DNA from: Parasitella parasitica NRRL 2501
Taxonomy: Eukaryota; Fungi; Mucoromycota
Reading direction: 5' to 3'
Length of the DNA stretch: 51,631 nt
Assembly: GCA_025201805.1 (NCBI GenBank)
Contig: MU619274.1
Span: 67,028 to 118,658, forward strand
Part shown: piece by piece, positions 24,323 through 26,665 of the stretch
How positions within the stretch are numbered: position 1 is the stretch's first letter
Layout: every line of letters starts with the position of its first letter
The notes under the pieces: model-generated
What the model saw: the letters and a program-made list of their open reading frames with translations, nothing else
Databases searched by the model: none
Told to the model about the DNA's origin: nothing
Program-made: the position numbers and the translations under genes

Positions 24323-25890
24323 AGTGACAATCTATATATATTTTGTGAATGGAATGAAACGAGAGAATAAGAGTGAGAGAAAAGAGCCTGAATATCCATG
24401 ATCCACCACCAACAACACAAAACCGAGGGAAATGACGCCATTTGAAAACGAATATCATTGGATTGATTCATCAGCTTATTAAGCCAAAGAGATGTTAGTG
24501 ATTCATTGATAATGTAATACTGACCGAGGAAAATTCAGTCTATTGAATTGATGAAATCAATCATGTATAGCAAAATGCACGATCAATTTTACGACCAGCG
24601 AACATGATGAGTTACATATGGTGCCCGACAGATGATTGACGAGCCCTCTAAAAAGCTTCGAGTTTTGCTAGAGCGCATAAATGATGGCACAGAGGTTACG
24701 ATATCAGTGCAATGTTGCTTAAAAACGAATAATAACTCCCTCGTCCAAAATCACAATGTTGAGTGTATTTTAAAGACATTCTAGGTTCGAGATATTGTCA
24801 TTATTGGAAGCTATAATCGTGGTGAGATGGATAGGAATTTCTGGCAAAACTTTTATCAACAAAAATTTTCATGAGCATAGCATAATAATGTGATGGTTCT
24901 ATACATAGATGGATATGCACTTAATACACACTAAATTAAAGCATTAAATTAGGTACAGGTCCATCCAAATACTGGAAAGTGAATATACTTTGCAAGTATT
25001 GCCAGGATACTTTACCATATACTTATTAACACATATTTTAGTAAAATGATATAACCAACAGTAAGAGTATCAGAACGTATAAATATCCCAACATTTTATA
25101 GAATAAATCATTATCTTTTTATCCTCGTAAATATCTGAACATTACAAAAACCTTTAAGATTATACCAGCTTAAAGCTGGTGCTTAAAATATTATCATTTT
25201 GCAAAGTGCTTCTCTTTTTTTTTTTTTACAATTTGAGGGTAATAATCATTATTAAGACATATTCAAAAACATCAAAATTCACAAAATTGTTTGCTTTATC
25301 CGAAAGTGCATGCTAAAAAAAAGTTTTACACAGTAAGGTCTGGGGAAATAGTTCAGCACTTGAAGCTATTTCAAAGCAATTGGTCACTTACTTCCTAGAA
25401 CATGTTTAACCAGTTGTAGTTGAGCATGTTTTGAACTTTTAATTTTTATAATTCTTTTGCGTTTGTATGAAATCGTTCACGGAATAAAAAGAGATCTCTA
25501 TCACATTTTAGCAAATCGGAGTGGACTCGATGAACAAGTCTGAACAATAAAGTACGTGAATATCAGCGCATATAAAAAGGAGAAGCAAGGAGAATACATA
25601 CAAAAAATACTAAATAGACATGCATAGAGTGAGCTATATACTAATTAAATCAATTACTACGGAGATCAATGTGTAATAACGGGCTGGTTATGTCAATGAT
25701 ATCCCAAACAGTAACATTATCTTAACACCAAATATAACATCTCCTTCCCCCTTTTGTGTGAGTAAAGTTGGTCTAGACGCGAAGGTTTGGCTTGGTATGT
25801 AATAATAGAAGTTGGTTGAGTTAGCAGCTTTGTCTAGATAGTAGCTTGATCTTTTACATATTAATGTAGTGATAAATTATAGATGTGTGA

Positions 25891-25910
25891 TATAAAAATT
25901 TACTATAAAA
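25891..25910 (+). promoter_or_regulatory. TATA boxes upstream of the secreted peptide gene
   Basis: TATAAAA at 25891 and 25904, about 60-70 nt before ATG 25963. Confidence 0.45.
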
Positions 25911-25962
25911 TAAAAAGAACAGAACCAATTTCAGCTTTGGGGTTATTAGAACATTAAAGAAA

Positions 25963-26344
25963 ATGAAAAACTACTTTACATCTATCGCTTTTCTTCTAGT
26001 AGCCATTTTGGTTACAATTATGCAAGTAACCGCCGCTCCGGTTGAGAATGATGCTGTGAATGAACAATCAGATGCTGCGTCTACTGAAGACCTTTGGAAG
26101 TCCTTTTATGACCAGTACTATGCTAGTTTGGCATCTCGTAGTTTAGCGTAAGTTCCAACATAATACCGCACCGTCGTAACACTAATTTGCCGCCGCACGC
26201 AGCGCTAGAGATGTTGCTGAACCTGCCCAAACCTTTCCTTTCCCTCCCTTCCCACCCTTCCCTCCTCCACCTACCTTCCCTCCCTTCCCCCCTCCTCCCA
26301 CCTTCCCTCCCTTCCCTCCCTTCCCTCCTTTCCCTCGCTTTTAA
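25963..26344 (+). CDS. Small secreted prepropeptide with C-terminal Pro/Phe repeat, 108 aa, 2 exons
   Basis: Signal peptide MKNYFTSIAFLLVAILVTIMQVTA-AP, then an acidic pro-region. Intron 26148-26202 (GTAAGT, branch ACTAAT, CAG). Exon 2 reads ARDVAEPAQTFPFPPFPPFPPPPTFPPFPPPPTFPPFPPFPPFPRF*, with synonymous third-position variation. Confidence 0.85.
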
Positions 26345-26515
26345 TTACAATATGTTATAACATTGGCCTTGAGATATTGGATCCGAGGAGCAGGTTATTA
26401 GTAGCCTAAACCTTTCACTAAATAAAAAAGCTTAGTCTCTGAATAGCGTCTTATATTAAAGTGTATGTAAGATAAAACACCTATTGCTGTATCAAATACT
26501 TGATATTTGAGAATA

Positions 26516-26665
26516 CACAGTCGTTTTATGGTTTCTGAAAAAAAAGTTCAAGTAAATGATAAGTGTCACGGTGTTTGTGATTATATATGTGGGTTTCTGG
26601 TAACAACCCTTTTATTTCTGATAGCTGCGACGTCTCTGAGAAAAGAGAAATGTCTCTCTAAGAGT
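26516..26665 (+). repeat. Left arm of a diverged ~150-bp inverted repeat (partner 29172-29329)
   Basis: CACAGTCGTTTTATGGTTTCTGAAAAAAAAGTTCAAGTAAATGATAAGTGTCAC...ATTTCTGATA...CTGAGAAAAGAGAAATGTCTC aligns with the reverse complement of 29172-29329. Confidence 0.85.

Follow-up and report, generated by a model that had tools for sequence, protein, structure and literature searches.

A putative secreted pre-pro-peptide with a phenylalanine-proline tail in Parasitella parasitica and its Mucoraceae relatives

The Rep1 repellents of Ustilago maydis are small peptides cut from a precursor that coat the hyphae and make them hydrophobic in place of hydrophobins, and the (VHLPPP)8 domain of gamma-zein is an amphipathic polyproline-II (PPII) structure built from a 6-residue unit with a His. 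Precursors of the KEP type are defined by an N-terminal signal peptide, internal near-identical repeats and KR, RR or KK sites between the repeats (PMC6339444), and those of the K2PP type by KR, RR or LxxR, the last being an extended Kex2 motif, after an N-terminal pro-region (PMC8528282). Here we describe a gene that shares features with each of these systems, situated at positions 25963 to 26344 of a 51,631-nucleotide stretch of Parasitella parasitica NRRL 2501 (contig MU619274.1, positions 67,028 to 118,658 of the forward strand); this whole stretch is referred to below as the window. Our reading, to which we assign a probability of roughly 60%, is that the gene encodes a 108-aa secreted pre-pro-peptide from which a protease would release a hydrophobic PPII peptide, perhaps with a role at the cell surface or wall.

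That the locus is a real, conserved two-exon gene is well supported, the model resting on comparison with homologues and not on RNA. The open-reading-frame (ORF) track of the window has a frame of 62 aa here (25963..26151, on the plus strand like every part of the gene), the terminating TAA of which belongs to the GTAAGT of an intron. Exon 1 (25963..26147; 61 codons and 2 nt), delimited by the ORF list and by comparison with homologues, carries the signal peptide and most of the pro-region. It is followed by a 55-nt phase-2 intron (26148..26202; GTAAGT .. CTAAT .. CAG, with CTAAT 17 nt upstream of the 3' CAG), placed by its identical position and phase in homologues. Exon 2 (26203..26344), delimited by the reading frame and by its substitution pattern, supplies the end of the pro-region (A62-A63-R64) and a DVAEPAQ spacer, so that the continued frame reads ARDVAEPAQ, and then the Phe/Pro tail and a stop at 26342-26344. 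The spliced product of 108 aa would comprise a signal peptide, an acidic pro-region with an aromatic helix, the residues SLAAR/D (the slash marks the candidate cut) and a 37-residue tail.

The window gene has its syntenic orthologue in P0001 (a Parasitella parasitica hypothetical protein of 108 aa), which is flanked, as in the window, by a GAS2-domain giant protein and an alpha/beta hydrolase. The hydrolase was considered as a functional partner and set aside, since it is syntenic only with Parasitella and absent from the other contexts. Exon 1 is 79% identical to P0001, with nonsynonymous to synonymous divergence (dN/dS) of 0.113/0.889 = 0.13, and every other frame contains stops; for exon 2 dN/dS is 0.030/0.548 = 0.055, with 15 of the 18 differences at third codon positions, and the alternative frames have either stops or dN > dS. 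Purifying selection on the tail is accordingly very strong. The sole paralogue found in the genome, paralogue B (G000:C43:171487-172002, minus strand, 152 aa), is 71% identical to exon 1 at the protein level, one indel of 3 codons keeping the frame; its intron of 57 nt, unrelated in sequence, lies at the same place and phase, and its tail of 80 residues is in the same style and more than twice the length of that of the window gene. A search of the genome with exon 2 returned only the window gene (A) and B. An intron of diverged sequence at this position and phase recurs in all loci for which DNA was read, these being, besides B, P. parasitica (62 nt), L007, the Mucor genes and Helicostylum. 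The spliced two-exon model of the first-pass annotation is thus borne out by the orthologue, the paralogue, the conserved intron phase and the low dN/dS. That annotation had also called the gene hidden, which is true of the ORF track and untrue of the databases, where at least 10 Mucoraceae genomes already include orthologues entered as hypothetical proteins: the family is unannotated in function, yet not undiscovered as a gene.

The predicted signal peptide, read from the sequence, spans residues 1-24 (25963..26034) with a cut after V-T-A, and its features, a Lys at position 2, a hydrophobic stretch from residue 8 to residue 20 and small side chains at -3/-1, are conserved in all homologues. 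The acidic pro-region occupies residues 25-61 (26035..26147); from the sequence and from AlphaFold2 it appears to form a helix with W45, F48, Y49, Y52 and Y53 on one face, and a YD.YY motif within it is conserved in the family. The AlphaFold2 model, computed on the orthologue P0001 with the family alignment, has one helix at 3-24, corresponding to the signal, and a second at 38-65, with predicted local distance difference test (pLDDT) values of 72-76. The residues L61-A-A-R64, which the intron splits (26143-26147 and 26203-26209), read as a candidate LxxR site of the extended Kex2 type. The proposed succession of signal peptide, acidic pro-region and peptide is, as far as sequence can tell, supported.

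In this part of the protein the closest likeness is to the K2PP precursors (PMC8528282), which share the signal peptide and an N-terminal pro-domain ending in LxxR directly before the C-terminal part; LxxR after such a pro-region, the K2PP site criterion, is present in the window gene, where an Asp follows it. It lies at residue 64 of 108, just beyond the first half of the protein, to which the search in PMC8528282 was limited. K2PPs were, however, defined on folded plant-pathogen effectors, whereas here the cargo is a short repeat, the pro-region is predicted to be helical rather than disordered and the cleavage site is putative. The residues ahead of the cargo are SLAAR/D in the window gene and Parasitella, ALAAR/D in paralogue B, ALVAR/E in L007, PLVAR/D in Thamnidium, PLAAR/D in M. 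mucedo, SLVAR/S in an Asp/His/Cys-rich subfamily described below, and LAER/D between the cores of multi-core genes. There is no dibasic site in the window gene; the Mucor spacers have a single Arg (FPP-R, LAER), and RR is seen only in L007. The genome contains enzymes of the kind such processing would call for, with two kexin P-domain loci and three DPP-IV-type loci.

The reading as a precursor, already raised at first pass, draws support from the LxxR site, from multi-core homologues in Mucor and from one relative with a different cargo. An identical 21-residue core (P0015:74-94), shared by at least four Mucor species, occurs in 1 copy in M. fragilis, 2 in M. ambiguus, 2 in M. bainieri and 3 in M. 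lusitanicus, with conserved spacers of the form R-x-N-A-(L)-(A)-E-R-D-V-x-A-E-Q between the cores. At the DNA level each additional core is an exon of its own flanked by phase-2 introns, from which it follows that the duplicated unit runs from the end of exon 1 across the intron and takes in the core exon. Among 7 core copies, the 21 pairwise comparisons differ at 5-11 of 63 nt, always at third positions and with zero amino-acid changes; such purely synonymous differences argue for selection on the exact peptide. In the locus L024 (a JGI metagenome contig, 1501-1870) the same leader, with SLVAR, precedes a tail rich in His, Cys and Trp that has no Phe-Pro tract, and the leader can therefore be seen as a module that carries different cargos. 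The L024 peptide ends in RW, which is also the C-terminal dipeptide of the Thamnidium-type Phe-Pro tails. On these comparative grounds the evidence points to a pro-peptide precursor, an interpretation that is supported but not proven.

In a further subfamily in Mucor (P0005, P0016, P0018, P0027) the LVAR site and the Phe-Pro tail are separated by an inserted Asp/His/Cys-rich repeat domain of about 70 residues that may bind metal; the loci for P0005 and P0018 lie at L010 10514-11100 and L022 2960-3551. In M. ambiguus and M. bainieri a gene of this subfamily directly adjoins the multi-core gene. As to public gene models, that of M. lusitanicus, FB192DRAFT_1450056 (L021 6001-7268; 198 aa), probably has a mis-annotated N-terminus, because an upstream extension stands in for the true start MQKSF... 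(L021 6582).

Set against the definition of the KEPs, the window gene has a predicted signal peptide and lacks both internal repeats and KR/RR/KK sites; internal repeats are found only in the Mucor homologues with 2-3 identical cores. The likeness to the alpha-factor-type KEPs (PMC6339444, PMC7329392) lies in the acidic X-Ala/X-Pro-like residues after the Arg (EAEP, DVEAEQ), which resemble Ste13 dipeptides. The differences are that the sites of the family are monobasic (LxxR or FPP-R) and not KR/RR/KK, that the window gene has a single uninterrupted tail while the extra cores of the family come one per exon, and that the cargo is an uncharged Phe/Pro/Thr peptide. Because their sites are monobasic, members of the family would be missed by KEP pipelines, and the string FPPFPP is absent from the portion of the supplementary files of the KEP survey PMC7329392 that was accessible to us.

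The tail itself (T72-F108; 26231..26341, by translation in frame) consists of 11 Phe, 22 Pro, 3 Thr and 1 Arg. Of the 11 Phe, ten share a single mod-3 class, as the first-pass annotation had noticed. This is reached by 4 of 200,000 shuffles of the 37-residue tail, a test that exaggerates the significance because the tract is a triplet-codon tandem repeat. Conservation across species is the stronger argument for the register: Phe or Tyr at each third residue is kept in nearly every tail of the family, and the PPPPT blocks preserve it. Tandem Repeats Finder detects a degenerate 9-nt repeat in the tail DNA with 78% matches, so that the tail is no clean microsatellite, and the initial judgement to this effect also agrees with the preponderance of third-position differences in exon 2. 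In the AlphaFold2 model of the orthologue the tail is without helix or strand (pLDDT 68-85). A PPII helix has three residues per turn, and the aromatic residues would therefore line one edge of the rod. The gamma-zein repeat is comparable in having hydrophobic residues at fixed spacing within a Pro-rich repeat, a one-sided PPII rod, and self-association or surface binding; the tail of the present family differs in its 3-residue unit with Phe and in having no polar face.

In composition the tail invites comparison with apidaecin, PR-39 and Bac5/7, in which a Pro-rich mature peptide likewise stands behind a signal peptide and an acidic pro-region, and in the case of apidaecin with multi-copy precursors and EAEP-type spacers. 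Those peptides, however, are strongly cationic, with Arg-Pro motifs, and show no homology to the family. The tail has 1 Arg in 37 residues and is otherwise uncharged, and together with the acidic DVAEPAQ spacer before it carries a net charge of about -1. Hence a classical cationic proline-rich antimicrobial peptide, a comparison that had been entertained at the outset, is argued against on charge. Mimicry of EVH1 ligands was also considered: FPPPPT occurs twice in the tail, but EVH1 class I ligands are characterised by FPPPP in a cytosolic protein with acidic flanks, and the protein here has a secretion signal and no acidic flanks; in saprotrophs, such mimicry by a secreted protein seems unlikely.

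The family looks restricted to the Mucoraceae. Among 1.84 billion representative proteins only 11 matched a profile of the leader, and further named members were recovered by word-index searches with the full-length orthologue and the family profile. The named members come from 12 species in Mucor (M. velutinosus, M. fragilis, M. ambiguus, M. bainieri, M. lusitanicus, M. circinelloides, M. atramentarius and M. mucedo), Parasitella, Thamnidium (T. elegans) and Helicostylum (H. pulchrum), to which relatives from Logan and from metagenomes are added; all named members are labelled hypothetical or uncharacterised. Pfam searches gave no significant match for the orthologue, both window exons or the tail of paralogue B, exon 1 having only sub-threshold chance matches. 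Searches of the ESM Atlas by features and by structure returned nothing usable. Literature searches found no paper on the family, and the sole match to FPPYPP in the literature was an unrelated peptide from baijiu.

In light of these features the following course of events can be proposed. The precursor would be imported into the endoplasmic reticulum and then cut after R64 in the Golgi by a kexin-like protease, releasing a peptide of about 37-44 residues. This would adopt a PPII rod of about 11 nm (3 residues per turn, about 3.1 A per residue) in which every Phe sits on the same edge, and the Tyr/Trp-rich pro-helix may shield that aromatic edge and keep the hydrophobic cargo soluble during secretion. 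The likeliest role would be that of a hydrophobic peptide associated with the surface or wall, akin to the Ustilago repellents. We hold this role weakly, and the surfactant or hydrophobin substitute suggested at first pass is likewise conjectural. The likeness to Rep1 would lie in the proposed role and in the release from a secreted precursor: there is no sequence similarity, the Rep1 sites are KR and PPII repeats are absent from its peptides. After a surface or wall role, a diffusible signal would be the likeliest. Two other assignments were tried and rejected, namely a hydrophobin, the protein having no Cys and no significant Pfam match (a search of the genome for PF01185 and PF06766, run without a positive control, likewise gave none), and an extensin-like wall glycoprotein, there being no Ser-Pro4 blocks and the Thr alternating with Val.

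Around the coding region several elements are conserved on the plus strand. From a comparison of loci, a TATA box (TATAAAA; 25904..25910) lies 53 nt upstream of the ATG, and a TATAAA(A) box within 110 nt upstream of the ATG is found in 7 of 7 homologous loci compared; an AATAAA polyadenylation signal (26421..26426) aligns in the homologues. Between the stop and this signal, the alignment and a covariance model, R1, delimit a conserved element of the 3' untranslated region (3'-UTR; 26365..26419) with two short hairpin-like stems and variable loops. It measures about 55-70 nt and is kept across species and paralogues though the introns have diverged beyond recognition, being seen also in L002 1074-1140 (minus strand), L007, L009, L010, L021, L022 and L026; run on the genome, R1 finds the element only behind its two genes of the family. 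No compensatory changes occur in its stems, and the fold therefore stays putative. Further downstream, at about 26513-26640 of the window, is a dispersed repeat some 125 nt long; the genome has at least 178 candidate copies of it, 80-89% identical, and it looks like a miniature inverted-repeat transposable element. Near paralogue B, a homopolymer of about 85 bases (T on the gene strand) starts about 140 nt past the stop (L002 about 940-1025, G000:C43).

Evidence from reads comes from X1, the only sequencing run with the locus, judged to be of the same strain by its zero mismatches; that X1 is RNA is only a guess, and its contigs drop rare variants. Contig coverage extends overall over 25500-26226. 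A 561-nt contig covers 25628-25902 and 25980-26226, skipping a 77-nt stretch (25903..25979) whose minus-strand ends read GTAAAG..TTTTATAG and whose removal takes away the sense TATA box and ATG; this joint has 247 letters on its shorter side, a depth of 12.6 and no mismatches. A second skipped stretch, of 62 nt (25540..25601; minus-strand GTATGT..CTGAT..CAG), is weaker, with 30 letters on the shorter side, and a third joint, 25551/25628, has plus-strand GT..AG ends. Read as its reverse complement, the sense TATA box forms the antisense 3' splice site. The two minus-strand joints suggest a spliced antisense non-coding RNA that spans the gene's promoter, exon 1 and intron. The gene seems to be under regulation, since X1 shows no sense mRNA and exon 1 is covered by the spliced antisense RNA. 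The depth of X1 spikes to 1861 over the dispersed repeat on account of the at least 178 candidate copies of that repeat, and a DNA run of about 12-fold depth would give the same. A bolder proposal, which we regard as doubtful, is that the family represents an unrecognised class of Mucoraceae peptides, made by ribosomes, freed by a protease, uncharged, PPII throughout and marked by an aromatic stripe, serving as a hydrophobin- or repellent-like coat or as the first secreted peptide signal, with expression gated by the antisense RNA and the 3'-UTR element.

A number of observations weigh against the release of a peptide, and several of them favour the main rival, that of an uncut small secreted or wall protein in which the Phe-Pro-Pro tail would be a permanent anchor or binding module (stacking on chitin or chitosan, binding hydrophobic surfaces or associating with itself) and the helix or the inserted acidic domains the exposed functional part. 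The Asp/His/Cys subfamily joins its acidic domain of about 70 residues to the tail with no obvious cleavage or basic site ahead of the tail, and there an anchoring module fits better than a released peptide. Both the window gene and paralogue B have one uninterrupted tract, of 80 residues in the latter, with no spacer-separated cores, and the pro-region is itself conserved (the dN/dS of exon 1) and comes out of the model helical, not disordered. At the junction Helicostylum is devoid of Arg; L026 has a Lys and a degenerate tail, L023 has an Arg immediately ahead of the core, and in the Mucor multi-core genes the first site reads M-x-x-R and not L-x-x-R; these exceptions weaken any claim of universal cleavage. 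Moreover, P2 is occupied by Ala, a residue that PMC8528282 does not list among those preferred at this position. A permanent anchor, on the other hand, makes it hard to explain one to three identical cores with conserved LAER/D spacers, and it sits poorly with the quite different cargo borne by the same leader in L024 and with the conservation of LxxR in most members, so that we judge it unlikely, if the most serious of the competing accounts. The precursor reading must also contend with the read data: the sense junction 26147/26203 is not seen in X1, whose contig keeps the intron 26148-26202 and leaves uncovered 25923-25969, which contains the ATG, as well as the 3' UTR; two of the joints at the locus are of minus-strand splice type; and the Logan-derived proteins include no full-length product from an RNA assembly.

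The same X1 contig, which is unspliced in the sense and spliced in the antisense direction and lacks the sense start region, is what would be expected if there were no protein product at all, and the locus were a pyrimidine-rich microsatellite beside a chance ORF whose only real output is an antisense non-coding RNA. This we consider extremely improbable in view of the third-position pattern of differences from the orthologue, the in-frame indels, the conserved intron phase, the conserved TATA box and poly(A) signal and the stops in the antisense frames, the spliced antisense RNA itself having no ATG ORF of more than 20 aa. Scarcely less improbable is the notion, floated at first pass, of a precursor of a peptide made on the ribosome and modified after translation (RiPP), in which the released Phe/Pro core would be turned into a natural product by macrocyclisation, hydroxylation or cross-linking. 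The layout of a leader with repeated cores is indeed that of fungal RiPP precursors, and one prolyl-oligopeptidase-like locus exists elsewhere in the genome; yet the cores, at 21-80 residues, far exceed known fungal RiPP cores and offer almost no modifiable side chains (Thr only, with Tyr in some species). Dikaritin-type RiPPs such as ustiloxin and phomopsin have UstYa/DUF3328 neighbours, whereas none was seen in seven contexts here: no neighbour, and no tailoring enzyme, is conserved in six of them (the window, P. parasitica, M. ambiguus, M. lusitanicus, M. bainieri and Thamnidium), and none was found near paralogue B, where long ORFs on one side were scanned. Nor did the genome give a match to UstYa/DUF3328 (PF11807) in a search run without a positive control. 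With neither a conserved neighbour nor a UstYa match, a RiPP pathway is unsupported.

The protease-released peptide thus being preferred, the family can be regarded as one of lineage-restricted secreted pro-peptide precursors, a status that the comparisons support without proving it. Its monobasic LxxR sites and its arrangement of one core per exon exemplify repeat-peptide precursors that slip past current KEP surveys, and a long uncharged PPII rod with a Phe ladder conserved to the letter would be an unusual natural design that may interest the field of peptide materials. To our knowledge, neither hydrophobins nor a characterised secreted peptide signal are known from Mucor and other early-diverging moulds, and the basis of the water repellence of Mucor-type aerial structures is only partly understood. 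For these organisms the family offers a concrete candidate for a surface coat or a signal, and one that is genetically testable, since M. lusitanicus has a three-core gene and is tractable.
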